A model generated the notes under the pieces. It was not told the origin of the DNA, searched no databases, and saw only the letters and a list, made by a program, of their open reading frames with translations. DNA of 64,000 nt from Salpingoeca rosetta. Its lineage: Eukaryota > Protista > Choanoflagellata. The stretch covers positions 2,177,774 through 2,241,773 of the forward strand of contig JAWQFM010000006.1 in assembly GCA_033442325.1 (NCBI GenBank), read 5' to 3'. The position numbers and the translations under genes were made by a program. This document shows, one piece after another, positions 39,553-64,000 of this stretch (the first letter of the stretch is position 1; each line of letters begins with the position of its first letter).

Positions 39553-39574
39553 GACAGCAAAGCAAAACAAGCAA

Positions 39575-39580: not shown

Positions 39581-39599
39581 AAGGCAGAGCCAGCAAGCA

Positions 39600-40338
39600 G
39601 CAAGCAAGAAGAGGAAGAGGAAAATCCCACACCCACCAAAAAACCAGCAGCAGCAAGCAGAAACGAGCAAACAACCGATTCTGCTTTCCAACCAACCAAC
39701 CAATCCACTTGCCGTTGCTTGCTTCATTCTTCTTCTGCGCAGCAGCTGTGTGTGTGCGTGGTGCTGGTGGTGGGAATGGTGATGGTGATCATGGTCGTCG
39801 TCGCTGCTGACAGGCAGGTGAGATGAGTTGAGGTGAAGTGAGATGAAGGAGAGGTGAGGTGATGTGAGGTGAGGAGGTGGGAACGTGTCATTGGTTCGTG
39901 CACACACACACACACACACACATTGGTGGTTGTGCGTGCCACCTTCCTTCCTTCTCTTCCCTTCCTTTCCTTCGTCGTCCTTCTCGCTGACGCATTCAAA
40001 CACACGCACGCACACGCACACATGTGCAGGGAGGGTGTGCGCACCGTCTCTCTCCCCTTCTCTCCCCTTCCTTCCTTCCATCCATCCTTCCATCGTTGTC
40101 CATTTTCTTCTCCTGTGATGAACCACGCACAACCAACCAGCCAACCAACCAATGACCACATGAATGACCCATCCATCGACAGGTGAGGGTGAGATTGAGT
40201 GCTCGCACTTCTTCCTCCTCCACTCCGTTCTCCTCCTCTTCCCCTTCTTCCCCTTGCACACTGCGCACAACAACAACAACCACCACCACCATCAACAACA
40301 ACACCAACACAGCGCACACTGTCATCGTGCACACACAG

Positions 40339-40388
<50 letters not shown>

Positions 40389-40816
40389 TCACCGTTGTGT
40401 GGTGACAGAACAACTGCCATCAGCCACCGTCATGCAGCGGCCACCTTGAGAATGGATCATGCAGCCTCTTCACCAGTGAGCAGCACACACATGAGAAAGA
40501 GGGGGAAATGACATCAACCAACATCACAGCCAATGTATGTGTGTGTGTGTGCACGGGGTTGCGTTCCTTCTCATCCTCCCCCTTCTTTCTCCTCCTCTCT
40601 GCCTGTGTCTGTGACACACGCTGCTCACTGCTGCTGTTGTTGCTTGCTTGTTTGTGGTGCGTGCAGATGGATGTATTCCATCATCATCATCAGCAGCAGC
40701 AGCAGCAGCAGGTGCTGGCTGATGCGTGAGGCAGTGGGCAACTCCCACCAACCAACCAACAAATGACTACATGCTGACGGATGACAGGTGATCGAACCAC
40801 TGCATCACCCAGACAG

Positions 40817-40855
<39 letters not shown>

Positions 40856-42763
40856 GACGTGTGTGTGTGTGTGTGTGTGTGTCTCGAGGTGCATGTTCTC
40901 TTCTCCACCACCCACACGCCATCATCACCGCCTCCTCATTTTCTTGTGTGTTTGCTCACATCCTTCCCTTCCCACTCTCAACACCACTATCACCTTCCAC
41001 GCTTGTTTCTCCTTCCTTCTGCTGTCGCCGCACAGACGGCCCTTGAATTAGCAGCTGTCACCCCCACCTCCTCCTGCACCAACCACCACTGCTCTGGTGG
41101 GATGAACAGACGGGCGCTGCCATGTGATGACCATCCAGCCACGCTGTATGCGGCTGTGGAAACAGCAACACCAACACACACCACACCACAAACAAGCAAG
41201 CGATGAGCAACGTGAGTGCATCACTGCTCGTGCGCATGCGTGTGTATGCTGCGCACCGCACCAGTGTGCGTGTCTGTGATCGTTGTCTCTGCTGCTCCTG
41301 TCTCCCCTTGTTGTCCCACATCAATGTGCATGCATGTGTGTGGTGCGGCTGCCTGTTTTGCCTTGCTTGATGCGCTGTCTCATTCGTCGTTCTCACACAC
41401 AACTGCTTGCACACCTGCACATTCTCCACCTTGCAGCCGCTGCTTATATTCCCCTCTCTTTCTCGCCCTCCCTCGCGGCCATCACAACAACAGCAGCAGC
41501 AGAGAATGCACCACCACCATCACTAGCTGCTGAACACATCCCCCAGCCAACCAGCCAACCAACCCATCGCCCGCTGCAGCTGCTGGCGGAAGCTGGCTGT
41601 TTGCTGCTGGGAACAGGTGGCGACAGCACAAGTTGCACTTTCGGCGGGAAGCAGCAGCAGCAGCAGAGGTGAGGGCGAGAAGAAGAGGGAAAACGGAGAG
41701 GAGATGTTTGTTGGCTGGTTGGATGGATGGATGAGGTGGGGTGGGGGATGCTGGGTGAGTGTGATGTGGTGTGGTGTGGTGTGGTGTGGCTGGCTGGTGA
41801 CAGAGGATGGTGGTGTGTGGTGGTGGTGTGAGGAAGAGGGATGGAAGGAAGGATGGGGTGCAGCATGTCTTGTTCCCTCCCTTCTGTTTTCAGTTGTCTC
41901 TCTCTTCCCTTTGTTCTTCACACCTGCATGCACAACACCAGCAGTGGCAGTAGCAGTGTGGCTGCGCACATATCCATACTCCCTCTTTCCCTCCCACTCA
42001 CTCACCGTGCTGGGGCTCGCACACAACCACACTTACAGGCGATGCGCACGCACAAGCAGCAGGATGAGGGAAATGTCGAGAAGACTTGCCACGCGTGCCA
42101 GGTGCACTCGCCTCACACATGGTATGTGGGTGGCGATGAGTGGTTGGTAGTGTGATGGAGTGTGGTGATGGGGTGAAGCGAACGAGGGAAGAGGGTTGAT
42201 GGAGAATGATGGTCACGCACCGACACACACACACACACGTACGTACACGTGGTGCGTGTGATGTCAATCCCTCGTTCTGCTGTGCTGACGTTGGCCTGCT
42301 GTCTGCCTGTTTGTGTTCTCTGTTCCCATCCATGGTGCCTGCAACCACACGCACACACACATATGCACAGGTGGTGAGGTGCCAGCACACATCACAATGG
42401 TGATGGAAGCGGGCTAGCATGCCGGCTGCTGCTGCAGCAACTCCCCTGATTCGGCTGCCGCTGCTGTGCTCATGCAGTGTTCCCACATGTGAGCAAGGTG
42501 AGCCCATCATGCATGCTTTGGTTGGCACATGGCGCTTGTGTTGCTGCTCTGGGTGTGCTTGGTGTTGCTGCTGCCGTGCCTCGTGCAGCAGTGTAGCTGT
42601 GCAGCTCACATGCCATGTGTGCTTGTGGCTGCAGGGGCGACTGCCTGAGGATCGTTGGAGGATGATGGGCGGTGCACACATGATAGATTGGGAGGAGCAG
42701 CTGTGGACACACACGTCCATGGTCATGGTGGGCACATCCAACCACAGCGACGCAGTCATGTGC

Positions 42764-42818
<55 letters not shown>

Positions 42819-45800
42819 GTGGGGCGATGAGGAGGAAAGCAGTGGAGGGACAGGAAGGTGAACACGTCTGCTGTGCTCACATGCCATACCTGTGCCTTGT
42901 ATGTGTTGATGTTGTTGTGTCTTGTCGTTGTGTGTTGGTTGCATGCGCACCAGGGCCACATCAGAGGAGGGAAAGGAAGCCGCCATGAACGACACATCGT
43001 CACCATCATCAACCCTTCCCCATTTCTTTCTCCTTTCTCGCTCTTCCACCTCAGCTCCTCTGTCACCGCCATCACCACCGTCACCATCATCGCCATCGAC
43101 TGCATAGCCGACATCACACTCCGGCTGACACCAGCTCCAATCTGGCGTGAGGAACACATTGCACATGTCACTCGCTCTCATGAAGAGGTGAGCAATGTGT
43201 GCGTGTGTGTGTTGTGGTGAGTAGGGACAACATGTGTGCGTGTGGATGTGTGTCAGTGCGGGTGGTTGGATGGGGCTGGCGTGTGGTTGATGATGCTTCG
43301 CTGTCAACCTCACCCCCGCATTCTCCTCTTCGTGCGTCTGTACACACACACGTTTCACAGCGTTGAGGAGGCGCATGAAGCGGTGGAACCAACGACGATG
43401 ACGATGACGAGTGATGCAGGTGAGAGGCCGACTGAGATGTGTATGTGTGTGTTGGTTGACACGCTGTGCTTCCTTCTTCGCCTCCCCTCTTTCCTGGTCT
43501 GTTCTGTCCACTCATGTGTCTTCTCTTCTTCTTCTCCCCTTTTTCGATTGATTTGGACACAGTGCCATGCATCCTGTCTCCGTCCAACCAACCAGCCAAG
43601 CAGCCGAGCGAGCGAGCAAATGGACACGGCGTGGCAAGGGGCCGTTTGTTTTCACCGTTTCCACCACCAGCAGCAACAACAGCTGATGTGTGGCTGTATT
43701 TTGGATGAACTGGCCTTCCGTCTCTTGTCCATCTCCATCTTCTCCCTCGTCGTTGTCGTCATTGGTCACCAACAGCAGCGGCTGCGGCCGTGGATGTGGA
43801 GGTGAGATGAATGGGTGGGGATTGTGGTGGTGATGTGTGATGTGTTGGGTGTGAACAACAGCATGTATGCGGGTGTGATTGTGCGGTGCTGGTTGGATGT
43901 CGTTGGGTCTGTTGGTGATGGCAATGGGGTTTGTCGTCGTTGATATCCCCATTTGTGACAACTCACCTCTTTCTCCACACGCACACACACAGGGTGTGAT
44001 GTGCGTCGATGTGCTGTTGCCTCGCATGACGACGACGATGATGGTGGTGAGTGGTTTGTGGTGGATGTGGACTTGCGCACGCACACGCATGTGCAGATGT
44101 GATGCTTGTGGTGGTGGTGGTGAGGATGTGACATGTGCGTGCACAGGTGATGATGTGGGTGATGTGAATGTAACAAAGGAGGTGGATGTGGTTTGTTTCT
44201 GCCATGCTGGCTCACTGCGTGGTGTGATTCTTGCTGATCCGGTTCTGTGCTTGCGCATGTCTACATGTGTGTGATTTGCACAGGACGATGGCCGTTCTCT
44301 TCCCAAGTCCTCATGACATGAGCAGGGCGATACACGCACACACACAACCGTGCGAGAAAAGAAGGCACAAGGTGAGAGGCTGCCGCTGTGTGTGTGTGTG
44401 TGTGTGGTGATGGGGTGGTAGTACTCATTCACACGCACGTACACGCATGTACACATGCATGCCAACACACCAGAGCAGTCATTGGCTGTGGGGTGGTTGC
44501 ACTGACGTGTGTCACATGAATCAATCTCACAACTCAAATGTGTGTGTGTGTGTGCGTGGCTGCAGGCGGACGTTGTGCGGGTTTCCCCGACCAAATTTCC
44601 TTCCTCCTTTTCCCAACCAATCGCCTTTGCTCTGTGTCATCATCATCATCAGCCTTCCCCATGTGATGTGGAGCTGTTGAGGCATGATCGAGACAGCGGC
44701 CAACACAGGTAATGCAGCAGTGGTGATGTGGTGGATGTGGTGGATGTGGTGGTGTTGTGTGCTGGGTGCTTGTTTCGTTGTTCTTGTGTGTAGGTGATGC
44801 ACCCGCCCACAACATGCTGCATAGTCCCATGCGTGGTCCCTTTGTGTCCCTCCTTTCCTGTCCTCACCATCACCGGTCATTGTTCGTCCCTTGTTGGTTT
44901 CTCCTTGCCTCACAGGCGGGCATGATGCTGCTGCTACTGCTGGTGGCTGCTGTGATGATGGCCGTGCGTGTGCCTGTGCGCTGTGCACCGTGTTTGGGGC
45001 TGCGCCGATGAAGACAAGGAAGGACACGGCCCGTGCCCACCACTCTTCCCCTTTCATCTCCTCTTTCTGCTCCATCAGCGATGACGATGGTGGCCGTGGC
45101 ATGTGATTGCGGTTCCTTTTTCTGGCTTTGCTGTGGCACATCGGCTGGCTGGCTGGCTGCATCAAGCACGGGTGAGGATAATCGTTGATGGTTGGTTGGT
45201 TGGTGGTGGGCTGAGTTGTGGAGTGATGGGAAGCAGGGGAAGGGGGAAGTAACACGGTGGTGCGACGTGGGAGTGCAGAGCGAAAGGAGGGAGAGGGAAG
45301 GGAAGTGATAGGAGGGCGATGATGTTGGTTGGGGGATGGGGGGTGCGTGTGCACATGCACGTGATATCGTGTGGTGGTGGTATCACATGACGAGACACAT
45401 ATCAGTGGCTCATTCCTTTTGCTGGCACCTGTGTGATTGTGATTGTGTGATTGTGGTTGTGATGATGACTGCAGCAGGCAACACACGGCGGTGGATGCCG
45501 GATTGGATTGGCTGGGGTTGACTGGCCATCGTGTCGTGTCGCCCATTTCTCTCCCTCCCCTTGCTCATCTCAACCGGGAACACACACGGCCATGTGTGCA
45601 TGTGTGCGTGTACATGTGTGTGCATCGCCATCAACCACGCCGACAGCGACGCGATGCACGAGGTGAGGGCACGCAATGGTGTGTGTTTGGTGGAAGGGAT
45701 TGAGGGGAAGTGGGAGGAAGGCGTTCATCATGGCCACCATCACCACCACGGCTGTGCACCTGGTCATGTGACCGTGCATTTGGGGGGATGGAGATGAGGG

Positions 45801-48800
45801 GAGAGATGTTGTCGTTGTAATGCTTGTGGTGGTTGTGTTTGCATTGCTGTGCATGGTGCATCGTCTCACTCTGCAATGCCATGTGTGACAGTGTGCGTGT
45901 GTGTGTGTGTGTGACTGCAGATGTGCGTGCGCGTGTGCGCATATGTCAGGCAGATGCGTTGATCGACGACGAGGTGTGTGTGATTGTGGTTGACCTTTGT
46001 GTGCTTGTGCCATCACAACTACGTACAACACCAAGCACATCATCACCGTTTCACCCCAGATGTTGTTGTTGTTCATTCATGCATGACATGCTCACATCCA
46101 CCGCCCTCCCCTTGCTTCTCCTTCTTCCTCTCTTCTGCTGCCACCCCTCCACTGTTTCCCACCACCCCCTTTTCACCCACACACAGAGAGGAACCCATCC
46201 ACATCCAACACCCATGCCCACGCCCACATCCACGCACGCATGCCATGCCATGGCGAGCTGTGCCACCTCAACCAACCCAACTCAACCCAGGCCGAGGAAA
46301 GGAAGAGGGGAAGCAAGGACAGAAGACGTTATGCTCCCAACAGATGTGTGTGTGTGCATGTTGATGGACGGTGTTCTCCCCCCCCCCTCCATCGCCTCGC
46401 CTCTTGCTTCCATGACGATCTGGCTGGGTGGCTGTTGCCCCCCTCCCCTTGTTTATGTTCTCTTCCAGCCTTTTGTGGCTGTTCGTTGTCTGTTGTGACT
46501 GTGAGGAGCGGAGGAGAAAGCGAAAAAGAGAAGAAGAGGGGGAGGAGAGGAGAGGAGAGGGGGTACATGCTGTCCACAACTCTGTGTGTGTGTGCGTGTG
46601 TGTTTGGCTGTTTCTTCTTTTCCAATCCCCCCTTCTCCCTTCCCTCCTCAGCCTGCAAGGCCTGTGAGCCTGCGTTGCATTCACACACACAGTGCTGTTC
46701 CCCCTTCTTCTCCTCCCTCTCCTTCTTCTGCACGCAAGTCCGCCCTTCAACAAGCAAACGCAGAAAGCAAACAGCAGTTGCCGCACAAACGCAGCAGTGG
46801 GCGATTATTTGTGGCATCTTCCACAAATCGCCCAAACACGAACCAACAAGACCAACACAACAAACAAGCGACAGGCGACACGCGAATCAAGGTGCGTGCA
46901 TGTGTGTGCTTGAGTGGGAGGTGGTGGCTTGCGTTGTTCGTGTGCGTGGCTGGCGCAGGGTTGGTGGAGAGGAGGGTGAGCGTGCGCGTTGTGACGGGCA
47001 CTCACTGGCGGTCCTGTTGTGGGTGATCTCGTTTGGTTCCATGGACTGTGTGGGGTGTGGTGGGTGATGGTGTGATGGTGAACAGTTGCAAGCAGAGAAC
47101 ACGCACAGCAGCGACCACACCATGGATGTGTGCAGGGCCAAAGGCATGCAAGGCGTTGCCCACGGTCAGTGAGGCTGACATATGTGCTGCACAGGCCCAT
47201 GCCACGCTGGCACCGTGAGTTTGGGTGAGTTCTGTCAATTGGTTTGACTGCTGTGTGGGTGCGTGTGATTGTGTATGTGAAGGAGGGAGAGTGGGACGTG
47301 GCTGTGGTGGGTGTTGTGACCTCACACGCTCTCCTGCTGCTGTGGATGCATTTGGCTCACACGCACAGACACACACACACACAGAGGGATGATGGGCTGC
47401 ATCGACCCACACACATGAGTGTGTGAACACACACGCACACACGCACACGCTGACAGGCAGTCTGATGCCACCTCACGGTGCGTTGCACTTGCATGTGTAC
47501 ATGACTGTGACTGTGTGCATGTCGTTCATGCTGTGTCTGCTTGTGATTCACACTGTGTGTGTGTGTGGTGGCTGCTTGCTTCCCTCTGTCTCACACACAT
47601 GTGTATGTGTTTGGATGGTGACACACACGCACACAGACAGACAGTGAGTGGGTGTGCAGACACACATGCCCACACAGCAAGGCAGGGCATACTCTTCCTC
47701 CTCTCCTCTCCCTCTCTCCCTCTCCTGCCACCACCGCTGGTGCATGGAAGGACCAGTGGATGCAAGGCGTGTTGGATGACGCTGGGCTGGCTGATGTCTT
47801 TCCCTTGGTGTGTGTGTGTGTGTGTTTGCAGCACTGCTGCTCTTGTTTCCCGCTGTTTGTGTCTGTTGTGTTTGTTGTGCGTTGCTGCTTCCTGTGTGTG
47901 TGTGTGTGTGTGTGTGTGTTCACCACAGCCACGTCGTGTGCGCCCATCACCATCGTCTGTGCTCACACACCTCCCATGTCTCCCTTTCTTCTTCTGCTCC
48001 CTTCCCTCGCTTCCCTCTTTGTCATATCCCCACACGCACATGCACATGCACACATGGACGCTTGTGCAGGGGAAAGTGCAGGCTGTTTGTTGGAACACAT
48101 GGCAAGGCACGCGCAACCAAGCAAGGACACACGAGCAAGCATGGACACAGGACAAGCAAGCAAGGCGTGGGGCTGCCATAGACCACGCACCCCGTTGGAG
48201 AAGGAGGGGAGCGTGAGCGCGTGGTGTTGATTGTGTATGCGTTGTGTTATTGTGTTCTGTTGTTGTTGACAGCGTGCACGTCTCTCTCCCCTGTATCCTT
48301 CCTCCCCTCCCTTTCTCTCCGTTCTCTCTGTTCTCTCTTGCCACAGTATGCACACTGCTGTTGCTGCTGCTGCTGTTGTTGTTGTTGGCTGAAGGTGATG
48401 ATGGCGGTTGATGGGGGAGTGAAGCGGTGTGGCGCAGCATGGAGCTGTCGCTTGTTGTGTGTGTTGTGTGTGTGTGTGTTGCTTGCAGTTGATATGGGGA
48501 TGCTTTCTCGCTTGTTCTTACCACCTGTGTGTGTGTTTGCTTGCTGTCGTGTTGTTGAAGTGAAGTGGAAATATACAATGCAACACGCATGTGCAGCTGT
48601 GTGTATCGTGTGATGCTGCTGGTGGTCGATGGTTGCGGTGAAGTAAACACAGTGTGTGTTGTTGTGATGTGACTTGGGTTAGTGGCGAGCTGGGCGTGTG
48701 GCTGTGTAGTGGGTGTTGCATGCAGGTGAGGACAGCAGCAGCAGCAGTGAACGAGGGAGTGGGGGCAAGGATGAAGCGAGTGAGTGATGATGGCAGCGAC

Positions 48801-49700
48801 TGGTGGTGGATGTGAACAGGGCTGATGTAGAAGAAGGCGACAGTGTGGGCTTGATGGGTTTATGATGTGTTGTAACACATGCAGCATGAAACATGAACGA
48901 GGCAGGAAAGGAAGGGAAGGCAGGCTCAAGGGAAGGAGTGGCGGCACAAAGTAGTGAACAGGGACAAGGGAAGGCATGCAAGCACATGGAAACAATAGCA
49001 GCAGTGGCAAGAATTGAAACAAGACAGGAGGAGGGGTGCGGTGACAAACAAGGCTTGTGGTGACAAGGTGGTGACAGAAGGGGATGAAGGGAAGCACAAA
49101 TACGCACAGTGGGTCGTGTTGTGGTGCTGTGTTGTGCTGTGTGAAGTGAAGGATGAGTGATGTTGTGTGGGGAGGTGCTGTGTGGCGGTGAATGGATGGA
49201 AGAGAAGGAGAGACAAGGGCGAATGAAGCATGTGGCAACAAGTGCAAAGCAACAATGCAACACATGGAATGTGGAACAGCGAAGGGAAGAGAGAAAGGCG
49301 CAAACGTGAGTGAAGGGTGGGACAAAGGGACAAAGCGGCACATGCATGGATGTGTTGTGCCGTGTTGTGTTGTGATTGTGGAGATGGAGCAATGGAAGTA
49401 GAAGCACGAACATTGCAAGCAGTAGCAAGCATGCACGAAGAGAGAAGGTAAAGTGGGAAGAGGAGAAGGCGATTGCAGCGAGCTTCTTACACATCCGATC
49501 ATATCGCTGGGGCGAGGGAGGAAGCGCAGGTGATGTTAGAGAGTGAATCCGAGAAGCGAGGCGATGCTGTTGGGTGAAGTGGAGTGAAGTGAAGTGAAGT
49601 CGAGAGGGTGACAGAGCGGTGGGTGAGTGATGGTGTGGATTGAGAAAGGGTCGATTGCAGATGCGTGCAGGCATGGTGGGTGATGCTGTGGCACAGTGGC
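39600..49700. other. About 10-kb low-complexity non-coding spacer
   Basis: No exon-like high-complexity segments. Dominated by GTG/CAC/GT/GA simple sequence. Intergenic gaps elsewhere in the window are only 0.3-0.9 kb. Confidence 0.65.
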
Positions 49701-50020
49701 GAGTGAGTAGACTGAGGAGCGTTGTGGAGTGAACAAGGTGGATGCAAGGGAAGTTGTGGGTGCTTGCAAGCAACACGCACAGAGCAAGCAAGCGTACACA
49801 CGAAGTGTCTGCAGTGAGTAGACGAGGGTGAATCCAATGGGAGTAGGGAATGTTGTGAGTGCTTGCGAGTGAGTAGACGGATGTGGTGGAGTGAATCCAA
49901 TGCAAGCAGGAGATGTTGTGAGTGCTTGCAGACGGATGTGGTGGAGTGAATCCCATGCAAGCAGGAGATGTTGTGAGCAGAGGATCGTTTTGCAGTGAAT
50001 CCTATGCAAGTAGAAGAACC
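49700..50020. repeat. Degenerate tandem subrepeats (50-65-nt unit, core GTGAATCCxATGCAAGxAGGAGATGTTGTGAGTGCTTGC)
   Basis: Core starts at 49828, 49891, 49946 and 49995, with weaker copies at 49729 and 49543. Confidence 0.85.
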
Positions 50021-50823
50021 TACCAATGTTTGCGAGCAACGCAGCAGCACTGTGCAATCGCATGCAAGTGTGTTTGCAGTGAGCAGAGGATTGCTACTCA
50101 TCCAATCCACTGAAACACGTTCCCGTGCCTGCAGGTAACAGCTACACACAAACGCATGCACACACACACGTGTACACGTGTCCTTTGCGCTGCTCCTCGT
50201 CGTTCTCTGCGTGATTGCTTGTCGCTTGTGCAATCACATGGAAACGAATCCGTCCTCGCTGCTCTACTCCTCAGTTCCTCTGCTTTGCTCCTTCTTACTT
50301 CAGCGCAGCGTGCCTGCAGGCAAGTAGAAGTGCGCACAGCGCGGTGTGCTCGCGTGCACGTGTGCCTGCAAGCCAGCCACGTGGTCTTGTGCGTGTTGCG
50401 GCAGCTCATGGCATGGTGCAGTGACGTTTGCTCGCTTGCTCATTTGATCATCGGAGTAGGGAGACTGGGGCGGTGAAGTCAAAAAGGGGGTGCAGAAAAA
50501 GTGCGATCATGTGATGAAAAAAGGCTGAAAACTGTCATGAGTAGTGTCTGAACACTGTGTCGCGATGCACCAGTGCAGCTGCAGCTGATGCAGCGTACGC
50601 GAAGCAAATTGCATGCATGCATGCAAGCATTGGTTGGTCACGGGCCAGGGGATTTTGGGGTGTGAGCAATGTGAAGAATCTTGATGCAGTGAAGCTGTGC
50701 GCACTCGCTAGATCCAGTCACAAATCTAGATCTAGCAGATTCACTGAATCTAGATTGCGGTGCCTGCAGGCAAAGTGCACGAGGACAAAGCAGCGATTCA
50801 AACAGCTGCCGCTCGATGGATTG

Positions 50824-51347
50824 GCATACATGAGAGGAAGGATGCAAATGAGCAAGACAAAAAAAAAAGGAAAAGAGAAGGCAAAGGCAAAGAGCCGCTG
50901 AGTAGAGGCGCAAGCATGAGAGCAAGGCGATTGTCGCTGAGCAGGATTGCTTGCGGGCACGAAAAGCCGCGTCTGCGCCCTTGCATACAACTTCTCTTTC
51001 TTCTTGGGTCTTTGTTCTCCTGTGTTCTGAGCGACCTCTCTCTTCATGTGTGTGTGTGTAGTGTGTAGTGTGTGAGTGCAGGCAGAGCGAAGCGACACTC
51101 TTATGTGTGTTGTGAGCAATGCTTGCACGAGCACGCATGCATGCACGGCACATGCAATGAGAACAGCACGGGCGTGTGTCTGTGTGTGGATGCTTGTGTG
51201 TGTAGTGTGATGCGTGAGCGATGTGTGTGGGTGTGATGAGGCACATGCGGGGAGGCGAGCAAGCGATTGTTCGTGTCTCTGTGTGTGTTCTTGTGATCAC
51301 TCGCATCATGAGCAAACGCATCTCCACTACACAGAAGCAAAAGCAAC
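50824..51347 (+). ncRNA. Highly structured non-coding RNA segment, candidate pre-rRNA 5' external transcribed spacer
   Basis: Three long stem-loops with many G-U pairs that form only on the + strand: 50824-51053, 51076-51128 and 51192-51338. The last is capped by GCGAGCAA-GCGA-TTGTTCGT (GNRA tetraloop). The segment ends AAAAGCAAC at the gap. Confidence 0.5.
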
Positions 51348-51447
51348 NNNNNNNNNNNNNNNNNNNNNNNNNNNNNNNNNNNNNNNNNNNNNNNNNNNNN
51401 NNNNNNNNNNNNNNNNNNNNNNNNNNNNNNNNNNNNNNNNNNNNNNN
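51348..51447. other. Assembly gap (100 N, true size unknown)
   Basis: Run of 100 n. Confidence 0.99.
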
Positions 51448-54400
51448 CAGACTACGTCGTGTCAAAGGACGTGGATTCGTTCGATGGGCAAGTGCCTGCC
51501 ATCTTCGTTCCTTCCAAGCCACCCTCCCTTTCCCCAATCGCCCTTGTCAACATTAATTTGGTGAACATGCTTCTGGGCAAGATGTTTCTTCGTCTTCCTC
51601 CTCTCCTGTCAAGCCCATCGGCTGCACACGGCGCTGCGCGCCGTGCCTGGCTCGAAACAGACATCCTCGAGGAAGAGGAGCTTGTTCGTGCGCTGCAACC
51701 CACGTCCGTTCTATATCGTCCAACCAGCAACTTGGCCTCGGGCGTGCTCCTTCAGCGTGAGCTGTTTTGTGGCTGGATGCTTCCGGGAACTCCAGATTGC
51801 CCTGCCTTTGTGCATGATGAGGTGCTGGCGTTTGCAGAGAGGACAGTTTCCCACACGCAGTGCAGCGACAAGCTCACTGTTGTGCCCGGGTCGTTGCTAG
51901 CCCGCGTGACGGTCGACTTGTACGCGACAGGCACCGACGTCTACGTTCGCAGCTTTCGTGCACAGACGACAGCGGCTGTGTCTTGCTCTGCGGTGACCTC
52001 AGGACCTTCCGCACTGGCCGTATCCCTTACCGTGACGTCTCCAAACATGCTCGACAGCCTCTGGCCTCACGATTTCTTCTCCAACATCCACTTGGCAACC
52101 CTCCCCCTACAGCTCGTTCAGGCCTTGAAAACGCACATCTCTGGAACTGTTCGTGGAACGCTTGGCTTGGGCACCGACGTGTCATCAACGCCGCCATCCG
52201 TGACCACGTTTCTCGATGGAGACGTGTTTGAGACATTTGAGATGCGTGGCACGCCACTCTCTGATGTCCTGTTCACGTCTGTGTCGGAAGCCGTCACGTT
52301 TCTGCAGCCAGTTGTGGACAAGCTGCACCAGGAGTTGCAAACGCACATTCCAGCCATCGATGCTGCTGTGGCCGAGGTCCTACCGCCACCACACCTGTCA
52401 GCCCTCGTCACAGCCTTTATGAAGGATGCCCTACATCCCACGGCTCTGAACTTCTGGCTGTGGTTCAAGCATCAGCGGCCGGAAGGATCTGTCCTGGTCG
52501 AAATTCTGACTTCAGGCAGGAGTAAGCGCGCGACCTCCGTATCCGGCGCTCCGGCCGAGGTTGCCCTGGGTGTCAGGCTTGGTCACGCAGGTGTTGGCGT
52601 CCCGGGTACAGCGGCAGCGCTGCAGCCGATTCTGGCCGCCGTTAACAGCGTCATCCAGGCGCTTCCATCGTCAGCGGCAGGATGCCTCCGCATTGACACA
52701 TGGTCCCCGAAGCCACTGCAAGTGAGCGATATCGAGGGCGCGAGCCTAGACTACATGGTGCGTGCTCGCACATTGTTTCCAGTGGCTCCCATCAGCAACA
52801 GCACGACTGTGGACAGCGAAGTTGCCGTCGCAGGCGCATGCTCGCTGAGTGGAATGTTGGGCTTGAAGGATGCAATCATTGGCGGTGTCGGCATGCTGGC
52901 TACATATGACCTGGCGTCTCAGACCGTTGCCTTGCACTTTAACACGACGCACGACTTGGCCGACGCGCAGCTGCTGTCTGTGCCCCCATCAACTCCCGAC
53001 AGTTTGCAGAAGCAGAGGTGTCTCAGCGCATTCCAACCGTTTTTTTGGCCCCGCCCCAGTGCCGCAGATGCCGTCAATGATGCGCTCAAGCAGGCGGTGG
53101 CAAGCATCGACACATTCCCTCTAACACTCACTCGCTGGCCCATCGTCCCCATCACCGGAGACGTGGTTGCGCGTCTTCGCGCAGCCCTGAACACTTACGA
53201 CGATGATCCTCCTGAGATCTTCCTTCCTGCCCTCGAAAATGCCATTGCGGGTGCGTCACACCCCTCGCAAGGACACTTCGTTTCTGCTTCGGCCACTGCA
53301 GCCCAAGAAGACCCTGGCGCGTGTGACATTTGGGTGCAATTGTCCACAACGCACAACATATCTGTGACGAACCATCAGTCCCCGTGGAAGTGGCTACTGG
53401 ACGCCAACAGGCTTTCGGCTGAACTAACGCTTGTGGGCAGCTTCCACATCCGTCTTCAGGACGGGTCGGCTAGTTTGGTTTCGTTTCACCTCGGCGGCAC
53501 CTCAAAGAGGCACAATTTCGTGCTGCCCTCACTCTTGTCCATGCAATCAGGCATCCCTTTGTCTTCTTCATTCGTTGCGGACGTCAATTTGCCTGATAGC
53601 ATACGCACTGAGCTCAAACTAAAGGTGCACACCACCTGGGGTGCAACGCCGGAGTTCGTCATTGGTGCCACCCATACCAGCTCAGAGAAGTCCTCCGGCA
53701 CAACAACGTTCCATATTCGCGACAACCCTGTGGAGCAGGCAGTGAGCCCGAGCAACGTCCTCACGGTCCTGAAGAACGGGTTGCTCAACATGATTCCGAG
53801 GGCCCTCTCAGGCTCTCTCAAGTTCAAGGTGTACCCTTACCAACACACCCTTGACGAGGTTGGTGACCTCGAGCACATCATCAAAGATGCGGCGTCTCTG
53901 CTCACCATCCCCAGTGACCCAAACCCCTCGTTGGCAACCTCGCCTTCCTGCCTTGCTGTCATGGAAAAGGAGCCACCTGTGACGCTCAACGTCGTGCTGT
54001 TCGACTCTCACAACAAACCGACGCCCTGCAAGCTCTCACCTCTCGACTACACCAGCTGGAAGACCTTCGAATCATCCTTCAACGCTGCGTTACAGCAGTG
54101 CGGGCTTTCACATTGGCTCAAGTTCGATGTGCTTCAAGACACAATTGGCGCCACCCACACAGGCGGGAAGCCTTGTGCAACGTGGGAGCTTCGTCCTGCA
54201 GTTCCAGGTGCTCTCACTTTTGTGTCCGTGAACTCCACACCAGCAAGGCAGAACCTGACCGTGCAAACCACGCAGAACGCGGCCAAGATACCCTTGTTTG
54301 GGCTCTATGAAGATTTTGTCGCCATTGTCCATGGCATCTTCATGCAGCAATTGCCCCGCCCCAAACTGAACACCTTGACCATTCCTGCCAAGGATGCGGG

Positions 54401-54905
54401 CATTCCTGAGGAGTTTGCAGCGGTGTACCCTGCGGAGCTGACCGCCGTGGGGTTCAAGTTCTTCACCGCGTACAACAAGAGCGTCACGACGACCACCCCA
54501 ATCGACGACAGCATTTCGGCGGCGCATGGACTGTTGAAAGCTTTTGTGCGCAACGGCAGCGCGTCTGCCGCCATCGAGGCCAGCATCAGCGCTGCCCTTG
54601 CATTTGCGTTTGACTGCCCCCCTCCCAAGCAAGGCTTGAACGTGACGGTGTGGTCGTCGCTCAACAGCTCGCAGACAATTGACAAGGTGACAGTGCCAGC
54701 AACACCGAAAAACACGTTGCAGGTCATCGTCGGCGGACAGCTCCGCTCTCCACCATCTCCTGTTGTTTCCAGCTCGGCACAAAACTCCAGCATTGTCGTC
54801 AAGCGCGTTCAACAGACATTTCTGGTGATCACGGTTCTTACGCCGGCCGTATCGTTTCGGGGTACGTGGGGTCAATGCAAAATCTTAGAGAGCTGGGCAA
54901 TGTAG
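51448..54905 (+). CDS. N-terminal visible part (~1,150 codons) of a giant extracellular protein; start lies in the gap
   Basis: Frame +3 is open from the gap edge (DYVVSKDVD...) to 54905. No introns or microsatellites. Many N-glycosylation sequons (NST, NTT, NIS, NLT, NKS, NVT) and scattered Cys. Confidence 0.85.
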
Positions 54906-54912
54906 TTAATAA

Positions 54913-57900
54913 AACTTCCTTCCAATGGAGGTCCATATAATAATACGTGTGGTCAACGACACAAGCATCGCACTTCCTCTGGCCAAGCCCATGATCAGTG
55001 AGGTTGATTTGCACGCAGAGGCGCATTTTGAGGCTGGTGCACAAGAAGTCGAAGCTGACGTGTCCATCATCGACGTCAAGGCCAGAGACATTAAAGGCAG
55101 CACAGACGTAACGATCGACATCGCGCTGCTTCCACCACCGACATCCGCCCACAGCGACGCGTTTTCGCATGAGGCTCAGCAGGCAGGCGCTCCGTGTTCG
55201 TCTGCTACTCTTTCGCATGAGCTTGCGCGCAGCGACGTGTTGCACCAGCCTGCAGCGCGCAGCCCCTGTCCACACCAACCTGGACAGCTGCACTACTCCG
55301 ACCTTTCAACCATTAATCACGCTCTGCGGCAGCCTGATTCGTTCTACTCTTTCTTCGTGGCCACGGTCGACCTGAACACGCACTTTCAGCTGGAGAACAT
55401 CTCCATTGGCGTCGATCATCTTGCGGTGGTGACGACAGGCGCTGGTATTGATCTCACGATGAAGGACAACTTCACCCTTCATGCTGGCTTCAACGTGCAT
55501 GACATGGTCAACCAATTTAAATTTCACCTCGCGTTCCATGGGAAGGAGAGCTTTGTCAGGGCGATGAACCAAGCCTTGTCCATCAACTCATCGAGTTTGT
55601 GCTGGTTTGCTGAGCAGCTACTCGAGCCTTCAAAGTCAGTCCATCGGAGCCAAGTCGGTGTCCACCCTCTGCCTTTTGCGAGCAAGGCCATTAAGGACTG
55701 GCTTGGGCCATACACTGATGCCGCTGAGAAGGCAGTTGAAGCTGTGTGCAATGGGGGTGCGCGAGCCGATATTGCTGTGCTTTGCGAGGTGCTGCAAGAG
55801 TCCTTCGGGCACCCAGTGTGCACGCACAGCGCCCTTCACGAGGATAAACTTGTGCTCCGCATCCAAGTTGACTTGGTCAACTCTTCAGCCAGGGACTCAT
55901 TCAAGTATGACTCCGTGCTGTTTGAGCCTGTGAAAGACAAGCCGGAGTTGTCCATTGGCGAATCAGCGTCTGGGACCCTTGTGTCAGCCGCCTCCGTTGT
56001 TGGTACCGCCACACTCGTCATCGATCTTTCTGGCACCGTGCCGATCCCCTCTGTCCGCAGCGCCAACTTGACAATGGCTGTCTCGGTCAATGGCCAAGGC
56101 ACCATCAAGGTCTGGTTTGGGCCTATGCCTGTGCCTTTCTCTGATGTGCAGTTGAAGATTGGCGACCCCGTCACTCTGAGCATTGAGTTTGGAGAAGATG
56201 CCGGTAGCGATGCGTCGTTCAGCCTACCTTCGCAACCATCGCCGACTTCGTCCGCATCTGAGACTGCGCTGAGTTCCACAACCTCAGGAACGCCAGTGGG
56301 CGCTGGGATCACGCTCCACGGCAAAGCTTCTCTGACAGCCAAGGTGAACATCCCCTTCACTCACCCCTGCCACCTTGATGTGGAGATTCCCAAGATTGCA
56401 GCGTTTCTTCTGGACCCGTCTTCTGACACGTTCCACTTCAGTACTCCGGGCTGTCCAGATGGTCTGTTGAGCAGTCTCTTGCGCGCTCTGCCCCAATTTG
56501 GATTCCAGCATGCATTGCAAGACTTTGGGCGATTGGTTGCTCAGTGGGAGCGTGAGTGGGAGGAGTTCCTTCGCTCAAAGCTTGGGCTAGGCGGCTTGCT
56601 GGACGGACTTCACATTCCGTTGCTTGACGGCAAGTGGTGGACGCACCACCTCCACGTCCATCTCGGCGACATCTTTGGGCCTGGCTTCTTCAAACGCCTT
56701 CTTGCATTCCTTCAGCCAAAGCTCCAAAGCCTAAACCTGAGCGGTATCGGGGCCAAGATTAAGGACATTGAAGAGAAGGTGCTGCACTGGTTCACAGAGG
56801 CAATTCACCTCCTCCTTCATCCGTGGCTGATACACTGGCCCAAGGTCCCGGACGTGGCTGACAAAACGTACAAGTGGAACCTCGACCTGCACGGAACGCT
56901 GAAACAAAAGCCCGATAAGCTTGCGTTTGACCTCGGCTCTCACGGCATCGCCAACCTCGACTTCAACTGTGAAGAGGAAGCCCAGTTTTACTGGCATGTG
57001 AACGTCACCGTGACCTGGTCACCGCAAAAGGGTATTCGCTTCCTGTTCAACGGCAACCCAGCGCTGGAGCTAAAACTTGAGCTGGACGTTCCAAAGTGCG
57101 ATCTCATTGGCAGCTTCTTGATTGCTGGCATCGACATTGGGGCAAACGCACTTGCCAAGGCGGAGATTGTTGTGACGCCGCCAAAGTTCAGCAAAACTCA
57201 CGCTTGGGACTTTGAGTTGGACGCTGATGGCAAGCTTGAAGGTGACGCCATCCTTGGTTTTGCGGGAATTTTCGACCAGCTACTCCACAAGGACACGCAG
57301 GACACAATTCAAGCGCTACCAAACTTCCACTCCCACCTAAATTGCAGCTTCCAATGCTCGATCAAGGGCTGCAGTAACGCACCGCGCTGCCATTTTGGCC
57401 GCCCGCGTTTGTGTGTGGGGCAGCTGTTGACGTATTTGCTGCACAACACCCTGAGTTTCACCAGGGCACAATACTTCCAGAACGTGGAGAGGGTAGTCGA
57501 CTTTCTCGAGCAGAAAGTTGACCTCTCGCCTGTCTTACCGCCCCAAGCCCTCATAGACTTGCTGCACCAGGTTGCTGACGCGTTTTGCCATGGCAAGTGT
57601 GATTTTGATGGAGTGTTTGAAACCGTCGAAAAAGTTGCCGCCGTCTTGAAGCTGATCGAGCGCTTACAAGCGCTTGCGGAGCACTTGGCTGACCCCACAT
57701 GTTCGAAGACCACCCACGAGATGCAGGAGTTCATCCTCGACTTTAGCAAGCCCGACCTGGCGCCAGAGCCACATGGCCCATCGTACCCGCCCAACCAGCT
57801 GAACACAAACGGCCTTGCCGCGGAGCACGCAAAGTCGGTGCAGGAGATTTGGAACAGCATCACCGTGGAAGGCTCGTTCAACGTCAAGCTTTTGTTCTTG

Positions 57901-60900
57901 GAGCATCCACTGGAAGACCTGCTGAAAATGTTGCTCGGACTCAATGTGCCGCTTGTGGAAGTGACCTTCCCCGAGCTCATCATTGACATTGGCACGTCGT
58001 GGATGGTGGGGCCAGTGTGGTTTGTACCTTCCGTGTACGTGGAACTGGATATTGGAGCCGTCGTTGTTCTGCAAGTGCCACCGATGGTGATGACGAACAA
58101 GTTTGTCATCACAATCTTTCAGACAAGGAAGATTGGCCCAGCCATGCGGAGCCTCAGCCTTCGGGTGACTGACCAGAAAACTCACGCTGCCTTGCCAGTG
58201 CTTCGAGCCTCTGTCACTGTGGGCGGCCATGTTGGCATTGGCGTGAGCATTGGTGTGGTGGGCTTCTACGGCGACTTGTACGTTGGCCTAACGGTGAGCG
58301 GCACGCTCAGCATTCCCAACGTGCATGGGACTGGGCTCGTGTCCATTGGCGACGTGCTCCACCTCGTTCGCCTCAACGGCAACGTGTTCGATGCCACAGT
58401 GCGAACGTACAGGCTCGTCATCACCCTTGGCTTTGGAATTCGCGGCTGCGTGAGCCTGTGGTTGAAGTCCTGGTGCTTCACCGTTGTCAGCATTCAAACC
58501 CACTTTGTGCCCTGGCAAGAAACCAGCAATCCCCGCATCTTCACGAGCCCAGGCTCTGGATCTGGCCTCATCAATCTCAACGCAGCCCAACCGGAGGTGT
58601 CCTCAAGTGACACTAGCCTGAGCTGCTCTGGCGAATGCGAGCGCGTGCCCACATTTACTCTAACACAGGCAAACAACGAAGTTGATGTCAGTGTGAAAAC
58701 CACTACCGACGGGACACGAGATCCCCCGCGTTCCATCTCCATGCCTGCACAAGGGGATTGCCTCAGATTTTCTGGCAGCACAGGAGGGTCAGAGTTTGTG
58801 GTGCGAGTCATTGGCGTGTTTCGCTGCGTACGGCTGCCTGGCGCCGCAAACATGGCCGTTATCGTGTCCATGGACGCATATTCACCTGGGAGCCCAGCAT
58901 CACACGCGGCAACGACGTTGCACACGCCACAAACAGGCCTGACCGGGGACCGCACGCTGACGGTACGCAGCCTGAAGCGAAACAGCACTGCCGGCTCACG
59001 ACCCTCGGTCCACCTGACCCCCACCGCTCTGGTGGCTGGCGGTGCTGCAGGCTTGTACTTTGGAGGCGACGGTGTGCCGCCTTGTCGCTCCCTGAACCTG
59101 ACACGTGCACTGTCCACTGCTCATGTGGAATTAACCGGAACACCATGCCCAACACACGTCAGCGTGAGCCCCTCGCAGGACGTGCGCTTGACAGGAACAC
59201 CGGGCGACTTTGATCTTGTGCTTGTGGGAAAGGCAGGCAACCTCACTGTTGACATGAACGTGACACAATTGGTGCTGAGGAACAGGTCCGTCGAACTTGA
59301 CGGCACGGCCATCGCTTTCACGCAACCACCGTTTTACCTAACAACACGCGCGCATCCGACGGGCAACGCCATGACCACGGTGGCGGTTGTGGCACCCTCA
59401 GCAGTTGTCACGTGCATCGGGGGACAAGGGAACAACACCTTCGTCGTGCCAGATCCTGCTCAGATCGAAGGTGCGCTGCAGATTCAGGGCGCACTCACGG
59501 ATTCCTCGAACCTGCTGCGCGTGCACAATGAAATTCAATCAGGCAGCGGGTCATTGACGTTGACCCCGACATCGCTGAGCTTAAACAACAGCCTTGGGTT
59601 CCACCACTTTGGTGTGACAAACATGGACTTCTTTGACATTCGGGTGCTCACGGCACGGGGAGCTTCGGTCCAGACAACTGTACTTGGTCCGGACCGCTTC
59701 ACTGTTGTGAACCTGCACTCCGTCACAGAAACAGGAGCAACTGCGGTTCATCGGCTGACGGGCTGCGTGGATGGTACGGTCGGCATTAAGATCACACTTG
59801 ACGGCAGCGGCAACCAGCAGGTCCTTGTTGGCTCGGGTAGTTTGGAAAACTTTAACTGCTTCGCCACCATTGCCGGGTCCACGAGGAAAGACAGGAACTA
59901 TACCATCATCGTGGATGCCGGGCAAGACAACCGCGACTTGCGCTGGTGGTTTGGGAATGGCGATCTCCACGTGAGGTCCACACAAGCCGACAGCACGCAA
60001 CTCCATTTGTCTTTGGAGTACATTGACCACGTGTACGTCACGTTTGGAAATGCAAGCAATACGGTTCAAGTCACAGGAGCAGATACGTACGCAGACTTTG
60101 TGTTTCAGTTCAAGGATGAAGCAACTGCCGGCACCCTTGCCGAGTTTGGCTCGACGCCCAATGCGGTTCTGTTGAAAGCCGTGGATCGTGGCATCGTGCT
60201 TGCTGGCTCCTACGACTTGTTACTGGCGGATCCAGCTGCCACAGACTACAACCCAATGCAGGAAATTCAGGGCAATGTCCTCAGCCTTGGTCCGGGAAGC
60301 AACCTGACAACACGAGTTGAACTGAAGGCGGGAAAGAACGTACCTCACGCTCAGGAGATTGTGCTTCATGGCACGTGCATCTCATCTGCAGAAGCCGGCA
60401 GCAGCAGCCCGCAGAAAGTACAAAGATCACCCTCGTCATGGCTGCGGATGCATGCAGCGGCAAGGGGCTGGGATCCCTCCACGAACGTATCACGATGCCA
60501 AGTGCTTCAGCACGGCAACGCAACCCTGACAGCATCCCTGTCACAGCTCAGCGACGCCGTGTACATGCGTGGCTTCACCATCCCCACGACCCTGGACCTG
60601 CTTGACGGTGATGATGTTTTCGAGCTGACGGACGGAGGTCAATCCCGCTTTGATGTGAGTGCTGGCGCCGGCTTGGACGCATTCAAGCTGCAGTACCCAA
60701 TGTTGGGGTCGTCCCTTAACTACGGCGACGACCAGGACCCAGACACACTCGTGTTCAACACAAACGGAGGCGTGATGGGGACTATCAGCGTTGACCGCAT
60801 TGGCCCTGTCAACAAGCGGGGAGACCCAGTGTTTCTTGAGATCATCAACAACCGGCCTGAGGACATCAACCGTGTCACGTGCGACGTTCGCAGTTTCAGC

Positions 60901-63900
60901 CCATCTTCACAGCTTTCTGAGACACAGGGGAGGAGATACTCGCCTCACCGCTCACAATCCACGCCCTTTCCAGGCGGTAACGCGGTCACGCACGTGTCGT
61001 ATCCATCGGAAGGACGAACCCTGCAACTGAAACCCGACACCAATGTCACGTACGTTGTCGATGCTTTGGGCTCAGACACAGTGCTTCAGTTTGACGGAAG
61101 GGTTTCTTCCGTTGCAGATGCTCCCCTTACAGCCAGCGAACGACGAAGGGAGACAGAACAGCAAGGCCCAGCCCTCAGGGTTAACTGGCAAGTCATCTGT
61201 TCTCTCGAAAGTTACAAGACGACTGGTCTTATTCAGGTTCTGGGCACGGCTGACAGCAACGCAACTGTGGGCATGGTTGCTCCCAAACACGGCTCTGCCC
61301 ACCTTGGGTTGCGTGGAGAAGGACAAACCGTGGCCAGGCTCACCTATGACACCATTGTCATGCGTGTTCATGACACCCAGCACGTGTTGTTCATCGCAAA
61401 CTCGAGTGCTGTTGTAGACTTACAGGCGGCCCCGTTCGTGACAGACATTGTCGTTGTTGCGGCTGCACACGCACAGGTCCTCACTGTGGGGGCGCACGCT
61501 CCCACAAAGCCACTCATGCTCGTGAACGCTTCCATGGACTTGGACGAGGACACTTTGTTGCAGGCGGGAAGCGTCGTTGCTGGTGGAAAGTCTTCCACGC
61601 TGGCAGCGTCGTTGCGTTCATTCTCGAGGGCTTCCTTGCATCGCGGCTGCTTGTCGTTGTGGAAGAACAAGACGCACACCCCGGAGACGCCGGTGAAGCT
61701 GTCACCTTGGATGCTGGGATGGGTTGGAAGCGCGCTACCAGCATCGCACGCGACAATCCTCAACGAGCGTCGCTGTTCCATGTACTTCTCCCAGATACGA
61801 AATGCCACCCTCGACCGTGTCTCGCATCTTGACTTGGAGGATGCCCGTGGCCACGTGAGCGTCCTTAGAGCAGTGAGCGTTGCGACCTTCAATGTTTCAG
61901 ACGGCACGGCCTTTTCTCAACTTGGTTTGCTGCCCGACGCTTTAAACGTCGACATTGACGAGGATGGCGGGTACATGGTGGCATTTGACGAGGGTCGCGG
62001 TGACACATCGCATGAGGGCACCCAGCTTCGGCAGGTCACGCTGTGGCAGCCCAAGTTCTCGCACCCACATGCATCCATCAAGGCAACCGGTGCCACTTGC
62101 ACTTCAGATTCTCAGACTTACTGGGAAACCGAATACGCAGCAGATGCACCCGGAAGAAGCGCAGCGCTGAACTTCACCGGGCGCGGGGTGACTGCAAACT
62201 TGGAGCTGCACGAGGTCGCAGGCCAAACATTCATGATCGACTTGGAAGGGGTTGCCTCATCCGCCCTTTGCGAGCAAGGCGTTGGGGACGCCACGCTGGT
62301 GCTTGATGGTAGTCAGCAGGTTGCAGTCAGCAAGCCCCTTCCTGATGCGGACACATTGCCAGTGAACGTTACGTCCAGGGCGGTGATGATTGGCGGCCAT
62401 GGATCATCACACACCACTCGCTATGCCATTAACCTCGGCAATACACACACCGCCTTCAACTTTTCGTTGCACCTTCAAGCTGGCAAGGCCGAGGTTCAGT
62501 TTCAGTCTGGGTGGGCGAGTGCATGGCCCATCCCGTTTGGCCTGGAGGTGGGTACGGCTGCGTCCGCTGATGTCTACATGCCGAAGGCAATGGGTGTCCG
62601 GTTTCCAACCCGGAGCGTTGCCGTGAGTTACAAGAGGCACACTTATGAAGCGGAAGGGCCAGTGGTTGCCGCTGGAGAAGGCTTCTTGCTGGTCCCCGAC
62701 GCTGACTGCTCTGCGACCGCGTTCGATCAAATCGAGATCAACCGCAAGGACAGATGCAAGCAGTCGGTGCACAGGAGCGCTGCAGGCCGGCAAAGTGCTG
62801 TGGCTGTGCGGTTACAGACGACACTTCCGTGTGTGTGCGAGCCACACGAGCAGCTTGACGAGGCGCGCATCGGTGTGGGTACCGCTGCGGCTAGTCATTC
62901 TGGCGTGAAAGACGTTGTGACGCTGCATGTGCTGTACGCGATTCTCTACGGCGTGTACTGCTTGATGCTTGGCGTCCTGTGGATGTGGAGTGCGCTTGAT
63001 GTGACACGCAACGCGAACGCTGTTTCTGCGACACGTTTGTGGCTGCGCTCAATTGCTGGTGCAATGTTTTACGCACCCGTTGCGCTGACCGGCTTGATGA
63101 GCCCCATACTCGGCAGTGGCAACAGCACGATTGCAAGAAAGCTGTTGCTGATTGCGTCAGAAGTTGTTACTTCCCTGTCCGGCATCGGAGACTCGTGCAA
63201 TGGAAATGAACGGAGTGACCGAGCGCCGCAAATTTCCCGCGCTGCTGTTTTGGTTGCCTGGGCGATTCTGGCTGTGACAGGCACCGCTATTGCACGCCAT
63301 CACCGGCACGCGATGAATCCTAAGCTTCGACTCGTGTGGCAAGCCGTACTGGAGGTAGCGGTGGTGGTTCTCCTGCCTTGGGCAGTGCATGCCACAACAG
63401 GAGCTATGTTCGCGTTTACAATCCTTGCATGTGGCTTGCTCCTAGTTGCTCGCAACTTGCATGCCCACATGCGTGCCCATCAAGGCGCTTTGGACCTGAT
63501 GAAGAACGCACTTCACCTTGACAGTGTCGCTCCTGCTCTCATTCTTGTTGCTGCCATTGTTTCCAGCGCGCAGATTGGTGTTGGTCGCACTGGCATGTTT
63601 GTGGCGATGCTATTTGCGCTTTGTGGCTGCACAGTCACTGCTGCCTATAGTTGCTGGAAATGGGCGCGAGGACCTCCAGCTGTCGTGGTTGGGCTGGTGG
63701 CGTTGCAGTCAGTCTTTGGCATCGCCTTCACTGGCACTATCCTCGATGCCAGGCATGACACCGCGGGTGTGATTGGTGCTCTCTTTCTTATCTGGGCCAT
63801 CGTGCTCCCCGTACTCACCCTCCTTGTGTTGTGGTGTCGTTTCGCGCCACGGCATGACTATGCACCGCTTGATGGTGATGCGCCTGACAACTTTAACGGC

Positions 63901-63918
63901 GATGTTAAAGGCGTCGAT

Positions 63919-63999
<81 letters not shown>

Positions 64000-64000
64000 C
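54913..64000 (+). CDS. Giant membrane protein, C-terminal part (>3,000 codons, open to the window end): large ectodomain with degenerate RTX-like motifs, ~9 TM segments, polyQ tail
   Basis: Frame +1 reads open from 54913 to 64000 (first ATG 54925). The ORF track lists no frame +1 ORF here, as expected if there is no stop. Motifs CIGGQGNNTFVV, LDLLDGDDVFEL, VSAGAGLDAFKL. Hydrophobic segments from ~62914 to 63837. Tail RHDYAPL...DQQQQ. Confidence 0.9.
63919..64000 (+). repeat. (CAG)9(CAA)n polyglutamine tract running off the window
   Basis: In-frame Gln codons after the last TM segment. Confidence 0.95.

Follow-up and report, generated by a model that had tools for sequence, protein, structure and literature searches.

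A probable single-exon giant surface glycoprotein of Salpingoeca rosetta with a bacterial-type core module and a nine-helix membrane module

The 3′ part of the window, which is a 64,000-nucleotide (nt) stretch of the genome of the choanoflagellate Salpingoeca rosetta (contig JAWQFM010000006.1, here C6), contains at 51448–64000 the assembled part of one giant gene, PTSG_11386. We consider it fairly probable that this single-exon gene encodes one giant surface glycoprotein, in which an ectodomain with a bacterial-type module and a beta-roll stands on a base of nine transmembrane (TM) helices, and that the break between its two long open frames arises from an 89-nt deficit in the reference sequence. 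From the N to the C terminus the protein would consist of an ectodomain of ~3,850 residues, the nine-TM module and a low-complexity cytosolic tail, which is cut by the contig end. The whole protein would have ~4,450 residues plus the tail, with the signal peptide and the first ~205 residues lost in an assembly gap. A first-pass annotation of the window had described this gene as hidden, and as coding for a bacterial-adhesin-like ectodomain joined to a membrane module. Its reader was largely right and its interpretation as a whole is partly supported, but the gene is already present in NCBI as PTSG_11386, a partial hypothetical protein of 3,878 amino acids (aa), which a word search found to be 99% identical to the locus.

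Open frames and layout of the PTSG_11386 locus

The first-pass annotation had noticed a frame of ~1,150 codons followed by a frame of more than 3,000 codons without a stop, and both were found. The preceding open reading frame (ORF) at 51459–54905 (+) has 1,148 codons, and the translation of frame +1 of 54913–64000 contains no in-frame stop in 3,029 codons, with 59–133 stops in each of the other five frames of this segment. Both ends of PTSG_11386 are absent because of the assembly, which has a gap of 100 N (51348–51447) on the 5′ side, and on the 3′ side the end of contig C6, inside a (CAG)n(CAA)n repeat, where the window also ends. The gap hides the start codon, a probable signal peptide and ~205 residues; in the paralogue PTSG_02609, 205 residues including a hydrophobic signal sequence precede the first residue that aligns with PTSG_11386. 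The absent N terminus is encoded nowhere else in the contigs of the S. rosetta assembly (55.4 Mb, 68 contigs). The sequence just 5′ of the gap (50600–51347) is non-coding and of low complexity, with GCATGC runs, (GT)n-like tracts and an A-run; since it does not code for the absent N terminus, the gap must contain at least ~1.15 kb. The contig of public run X1 (13,740 nt) begins 1,153 nt 5′ of 51448 and ends within the repeat, at ~63945. The NCBI model of PTSG_11386 begins at an internal Met at 51582 and ends at 63354, within the TM module.

In the reference sequence the two long frames are separated by a TAG at 54903–54905 plus a +1 shift, both of which lie in a reference-specific segment of 124 nt (54829–54952, + strand). 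The alignment of the public-run contigs to the locus revealed a single joint, at which these 124 nt are replaced by 213 other nt in the contigs of two runs, X1, which is probably a DNA run, and X4 (contig of 9,973 nt), which comes from a different study. The 89 extra nt thus place both frames in one register, and with the 213 nt the spacing between two blocks conserved in the paralogue is 76 aa, as compared with 79 aa in PTSG_02609. The NCBI model spans the break by a 139-nt GT..AG intron (54849–54987). This intron would delete ~45 residues that align with PTSG_02609, and it looks like an artefact made to bridge the reference error. The stop and the shift are most likely a reference defect, namely a local deficit of 89 nt, and not an intron, and from the sequence comparisons we conclude that PTSG_11386 is a single-exon gene. 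In the paralogue PTSG_02609 (contig C4, 587346–601700), a single frame stays open over 4,768 codons. S. rosetta genes mostly contain introns, and an uninterrupted frame of this length is unusual there.

All parts of the protein are encoded on the + strand. The N-terminal part of the ectodomain (51448–54828, ~1,120 codons, frame 0) is open from the gap edge, contains no known domain, and is collinear with PTSG_02609 at 22–42% identity per 100 aa. Downstream of the break, the next part of the ectodomain (54953–56877) includes, from 56308, the helical-hairpin part of structural model 1. It is followed by the core module (56878–58620), by a beta-rich part that is conserved in the family and lies outside the structure models (58621–60516), by an RTX-like beta-roll or beta-helix (60517–61497), and by a beta-rich membrane-proximal part (61498–62907), which was modelled in part at low confidence. 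The latter ends in a conserved Cys-rich stalk with five conserved Cys and one conserved Trp (~62686–62844), after which come the polytopic membrane module (62908–63843) and the start of the cytosolic tail (63844–64000). The motifs quoted in the first-pass annotation were all located where it had placed them: GGQGNNTF (59419–59442) in the beta-rich part, LDGDDVF (60601–60621) and GAGLDAF (60664–60684) in the roll, and polyglutamine (polyQ) from 63919. The many N-glycosylation sequons that it had seen were also borne out, as the ectodomain contains 41 N-x-S/T sequons versus 21 ± 4.3 in 1,000 shuffles, none of which had as many (maximum 35). The TM-and-tail part contains one sequon, and the Cys content of the protein is 1.4%.

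About 12 kb upstream of the gap the window contains a full-length 5S rRNA gene (39434–39552, − strand; Rfam RF00001, 94.9 bits), besides which an Rfam scan of 38000–51400 found no family at threshold.

The core module and the beta-roll

A profile was made exclusively from 21 full-length proteins of the eukaryote type. Giant bacterial proteins match this profile at 100–133 bits, and these matches are confined to one region, corresponding to protein residues 1720–2300 (window 56878–58620). The alignment of the eukaryotic and bacterial modules is convincing by eye, for example in the block near LLKMLLGLNVPLVEVTFP. At the level of sequence these comparisons demonstrate that the core module, which extends over ~550 aa, up to ~900 aa, and is covered by no Pfam family, is homologous to a part of giant secreted bacterial RTX and LEPR-XLL proteins. 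The named examples are NBB77971.1 from Verrucomicrobiota, TVP76127.1 from Puniceicoccaceae (annotated as "LEPR-XLL domain-containing") and HUV15397.1 from Pelolinea (annotated as "calcium-binding"), and there are also unnamed metagenomic RTX giants. Segments of beta-roll or beta-helix come after the module in the bacterial and in the eukaryotic proteins. Otherwise the bacterial giants, which are the weaker matches in the search with a 1,195-residue family profile (see below), are a different kind of protein, of 3,000–5,600 aa and without the TM tail. They contain either 10–30 canonical RTX nonapeptides or beta-helix (Beta_helix/NosD), PPC and Ig-like domains, and most of them have little or no Cys (range 0–1.4%), although three RTX giants reach 1.2–1.4%. 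The LEPR-XLL motif domain itself gave no NCBIfam match in the PTSG_11386 protein, the N terminus of which is in the gap, or in the complete PTSG_02609.

Profile–profile comparison with the bacterial giants detected a weak similarity just upstream of the module, over ~160 columns (Prob 86, E 5e-6), but none downstream of it. We also considered an ectodomain collinear over its whole length with a bacterial adhesin, which is unsupported by sequence, given the lack of profile similarity downstream. In a quick maximum-likelihood tree of the module, the 38 eukaryote-type rows and the 11 bacterial rows are split by one branch with a support of 99 in the Shimodaira–Hasegawa-like approximate likelihood ratio test (SH-aLRT), and PTSG_11386 is sister to PTSG_02609 (97) and then to Salpingoeca infusionum (99). 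This tree is compatible with one ancient exchange as well as with shared ancestry, and does not indicate a direction. The module also contains an EF-hand-like loop (58312–58353, + strand). The bacterial proteins have this loop in canonical form and the Capsaspora and Balamuthia members in near-canonical form, whereas in the two S. rosetta copies it is degenerate, most of the acidic ligand positions being lost. A weak EF-hand match was the sole result of a sequence-profile search of the PDB.

Two regions of the protein were modelled. Model 1 (residues 1530–2400, 49 aligned sequences) had a predicted local distance difference test score (pLDDT) of 86.8 and a predicted template modelling score (pTM) of 0.71. 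In this model, long helical hairpins precede sheets built of antiparallel strands of 13–20 residues; the hairpins and long strands are also the predicted make-up of the core module. Its best Foldseek match in the PDB had an E value of 6e-3 and a TM-score below 0.1, and neither model matched the PDB at E ≤ 1e-3. In the ESM Atlas, model 1 matched unnamed clusters, mostly from Planctomycetota, and nothing usable came from Atlas feature searches with the mid-region or with the TM module. Model 2 (window 60400–63999, 26 sequences) had a pLDDT of 71.7. The Gly/Asp motifs in its segment, among them LDGDDVF, GAGLDAF and YGDDQDPD, form four turns that are conserved in the family and lie ~22–25 residues apart, and the predicted fold is a parallel beta-roll as in RTX proteins. 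The model thereby shows, as a prediction, an RTX-type beta-roll fold near the membrane. As compared with the RTX beta-roll of Bordetella CyaA (PDB 6sus, 7rah), to which the segment is 16% identical, the roll of PTSG_11386 is followed by a membrane module. It also differs from RTX repeats of the PF00353 type, because its turns are not tandem nonapeptides; PF00353 did not match even at E ≤ 1, and there are zero canonical GGxGxDx-hydrophobic motifs. A type I secretion signal is likewise not expected, because the C terminus is a membrane module.

The membrane module and the family of giant protist proteins

The first-pass annotation had counted about nine hydrophobic helices, and nine TM helices were also obtained from model 2 and from reading of the sequence, together with one amphipathic helix in the first outer loop. 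The first TM helix is at 62929–62988 and the last at 63769–63834. The predicted topology has the N terminus outside and the C terminus inside, and the charged loops alternate as expected for this orientation. The module is present in every full-length family member checked. Its sequence identity across the family is low (18–28%), and the conserved residues are a Cys, which lies in the first outer loop, a Pro and a Trp, as well as a P-R-H-D motif after the last helix, at the start of the cytosolic tail. No convincing match to a known fold was found for this module using Foldseek with model 2 or the ESM Atlas, and the weak, non-significant Foldseek rows were NhaA/SLC9 and APC transporters. The tail continues from the P-R-H-D motif into the CAG/CAA repeat that encodes polyQ up to the contig end, and it differs from that of PTSG_02609, which is acidic and Ser-rich. 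The sorting-type YxxL motif (DYAPL) reported earlier is indeed present within 63847–63870; it is not conserved and was rejected as a family feature.

A word search returned PTSG_11386, PTSG_02609 (32% identity over 81% of the query) and a metagenomic or metatranscriptomic protein, P0003, and the three align end to end, including the TM region. The S. rosetta genome contains just the two copies. In the JGI contig with P0003, an ORF of 575 aa (174–1901) overlaps the start of an ORF of 4,151 aa (1828–14283) in another frame; these are probably one gene of ~4,700 aa with a contig frameshift, which would equal the length of the S. rosetta paralogue. A word search with the Capsaspora module returned the query alone. 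When a profile made from the 1,195 residues that are best conserved was run against 1.84 billion cluster representatives, 194 proteins matched at E ≤ 1e-3, of which 72 reached E ≤ 1e-30, with values as low as 1e-225 in S. infusionum. The other choanoflagellate members come from Choanoeca perplexa, Acanthoeca spectabilis and Monosiga brevicollis (two copies, MONBRDRAFT_29887 and MONBRDRAFT_37486), and further named members are CAOG_08011 of Capsaspora owczarzaki, AMSG_10070 of Thecamonas trahens and QOT17_000772 of Balamuthia mandrillaris. All named members are annotated as "hypothetical" or have no descriptive name, and many further members are environmental protist sequences.

Among the matches listed, those longer than 2,500 aa that are strong and complete at the C terminus have 3,700–5,500 aa, 1.2–2% Cys, many sequons and 6–9 hydrophobic helices in the last 700 residues, and many of them begin with a signal peptide, which was seen in PTSG_02609 and in several homologues with complete N termini. 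Full-length collinear homology, including the core module, was found for the family of PTSG_02609, CAOG_08011 and AMSG_10070. PTSG_11386 has in common with these proteins, the Monosiga pair and QOT17_000772 the ectodomain, the core module, the Gly/Asp turns, the Cys-rich stalk and, following it, the polytopic module of 6–9 helices; its identity to PTSG_02609 is 32%, and lower to the other members. Pfam gave nothing above noise for both frames, PTSG_02609, P0003, the Capsaspora and Balamuthia members and ten TM modules, and NCBIfam gave no match in the PTSG_11386 protein or in the complete PTSG_02609. The S. rosetta, Capsaspora, Thecamonas and Monosiga members are named by locus tag nowhere in the papers searched, and a literature search for "LEPR-XLL" returned nothing relevant. 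As judged from these sequence comparisons, this is an unnamed family of unicellular Amorphea (choanoflagellates, Capsaspora, Thecamonas and Balamuthia) and of many environmental protists.

Alternative readings, proposed role and significance

Several points weigh against the reading of PTSG_11386 as one intact surface glycoprotein gene. That the 213-nt segment is open is inferred from its length and register alone, and the eukaryotic origin of the unnamed family members is deduced from their architecture rather than their taxonomy. As regards calcium binding, a canonical GGxGxDx motif is absent, and both S. rosetta copies have a degenerate EF-hand-like loop. The function of the protein is pure inference. 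Except for a small share (0.08), the runs containing the gene are not recorded as RNA. In two raw RNA runs, of each of which about a quarter was covered, 0 and 2 reads matched the gene, so that expression would be low or condition-specific. In several runs from three studies the 3′ end (61.5–63.9 kb) is covered much more fully than 53.5–56.5 kb, at 1.00 versus 0.48–0.93 or at 0.53–0.66 versus 0.11–0.14, and in X4 the 10-kb 3′ contig has a depth of 54 and is preceded upstream by fragments at a depth of 3. Such a 3′ gradient is as from poly(A)-primed RNA of a long mRNA and unlike DNA, and it is therefore read as probable low-level transcription of PTSG_11386, not as proof of it.

The near lack of RNA reads would also suit a real break at 54.9 kb, in which case PTSG_11386 would be a pseudogene or two genes, coding for a secreted protein of ~1,150 aa and a membrane protein of ~3,000 aa, or, in a variant, would contain a true 139-nt intron. 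The reference does carry the TAG and the +1 shift, and NCBI did bridge them by a GT..AG intron. We nevertheless regard a real break as unlikely, since contigs of two independent runs have the 213 nt in place of the 124 nt and bring the frames into register, the resulting 76-aa spacing fits the 79 aa of the paralogue, and the NCBI intron removes paralogue-aligned residues. Moreover, PTSG_02609 is one uninterrupted frame, and both halves are collinearly conserved throughout the family. The module common with giants of Verrucomicrobiota and Chloroflexota, and the RTX-like fold of the beta-roll, could on the other hand point to a recent bacterial transfer or to an assembly contaminant. This is extremely unlikely, because the GC content of the locus (0.55–0.58) is the same as in the remainder of the window, and the protein has eukaryote-type features, which are the sequon excess, 1.4% Cys, the nine-TM tail and the polyQ tract. 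It has full-length homologues in four eukaryotic lineages, and in the module tree its nearest relatives are the paralogue and then S. infusionum, on the eukaryote-type side of a branch with support of 99. In addition, the gene is not listed in the supplement of a screen of S. rosetta for horizontal gene transfer.

Described receptors have the same general layout, in which a giant ectodomain is joined through a Cys-rich stalk to a polytopic base with a cytosolic tail, and PTSG_11386 could be a divergent adhesion G-protein-coupled receptor (GPCR), polycystin-1/PKD-REJ, or Sib- or CRMP-like protein. This is very improbable. Pfam did not match the GAIN/GPS and 7tm_2 domains of adhesion GPCRs, and no GPCR was among the fold matches, which is weak evidence because the TM module was modelled together with part of the ectodomain. 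Pfam likewise did not match the REJ, GPS, PLAT and PKD_channel domains of polycystin-1, which has 11 TM helices as compared with about nine here. Sib proteins combine a VWA domain with only one TM helix and a tail whose NPxY motif binds talin; here VWA gave no match, there are nine TM helices, and the visible tail contains no NPxY. A further alternative concerns which part of the protein does the work, as the polytopic module could be a channel, a transporter or a lipid-handling unit gated by the ectodomain, which would then be a sensor or gate and not an adhesin. Nine helices exceed what anchoring requires, the module is retained in every full-length member checked, it has the conserved Cys, Pro and Trp and the P-R-H-D motif past its last helix, and the weak, non-significant Foldseek rows are to transporters. 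This is a possibility, although a doubtful one, given that sequence conservation is low, there are no conserved charged residues within the helices, and no fold match is significant.

For the single-exon surface glycoprotein that we prefer, a role in binding can be proposed. The ectodomain would form a long, glycosylated, disulfide-bonded stalk on the cell surface, probably stiffened through the beta-roll turns by the millimolar calcium of sea water, and would hold out the core module, which could then bind substrate, matrix, prey or other cells; we give this proposal somewhat less than an even chance. The nine-TM module would anchor the protein, and it may also pass a signal or conduct something across the membrane, although that the base does more than anchor is suggested with lower confidence. 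All the named hosts are phagotrophs that lack a wall, or cells that crawl or glide, with filopodia or microvilli, and these lifestyles fit a role in substrate, prey or cell contact, if only circumstantially. By analogy, PTSG_11386 may work like giant adhesion receptors on a polytopic base. Adhesion GPCRs and polycystin-1, and presumably the apicomplexan CRMPs, have the same design logic and a likely cell-surface role; adhesion GPCRs and polycystin-1 have no domain in common with PTSG_11386 and no detectable homology to it, and they may differ from it in helix count and fold.

The gene itself was already in the databases as hypothetical. The novelty lies in the family, which is recognized here together with its range, its two parts of bacterial type and its new membrane module. 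Both the reference assembly and the NCBI model of PTSG_11386 need correcting for the 89-nt deficit, the artefactual intron and the two missing gene ends. Choanoflagellates, filastereans and apusomonads are reference organisms for the origins of animal cell adhesion and signalling, and the family is large, conserved over these lineages and Amoebozoa, and absent from the curated domain libraries scanned. It offers a module, common to protists and bacterial giants, that is modelled with confidence (pLDDT 87) and has no solved-structure match. It further offers a beta-roll of the RTX-type fold beside the membrane in a eukaryotic protein, and a polytopic module without a detectable relative. S. rosetta is amenable to genetic editing, and the function is therefore directly testable. 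Quite tentatively, the family may represent an ancient class of receptors of amoeboid and flagellate organisms related to animals, a class that animals and fungi have apparently lost. In these receptors an adhesin-type ectodomain, exchanged once with bacteria, would have been combined with a new nine-TM module that would signal contact with prey, a substrate or another cell, or conduct ions upon such contact, and the core module would be a new ligand-binding fold common to eukaryotes and to the Planctomycetes–Verrucomicrobia–Chlamydiae (PVC) group and Chloroflexota.

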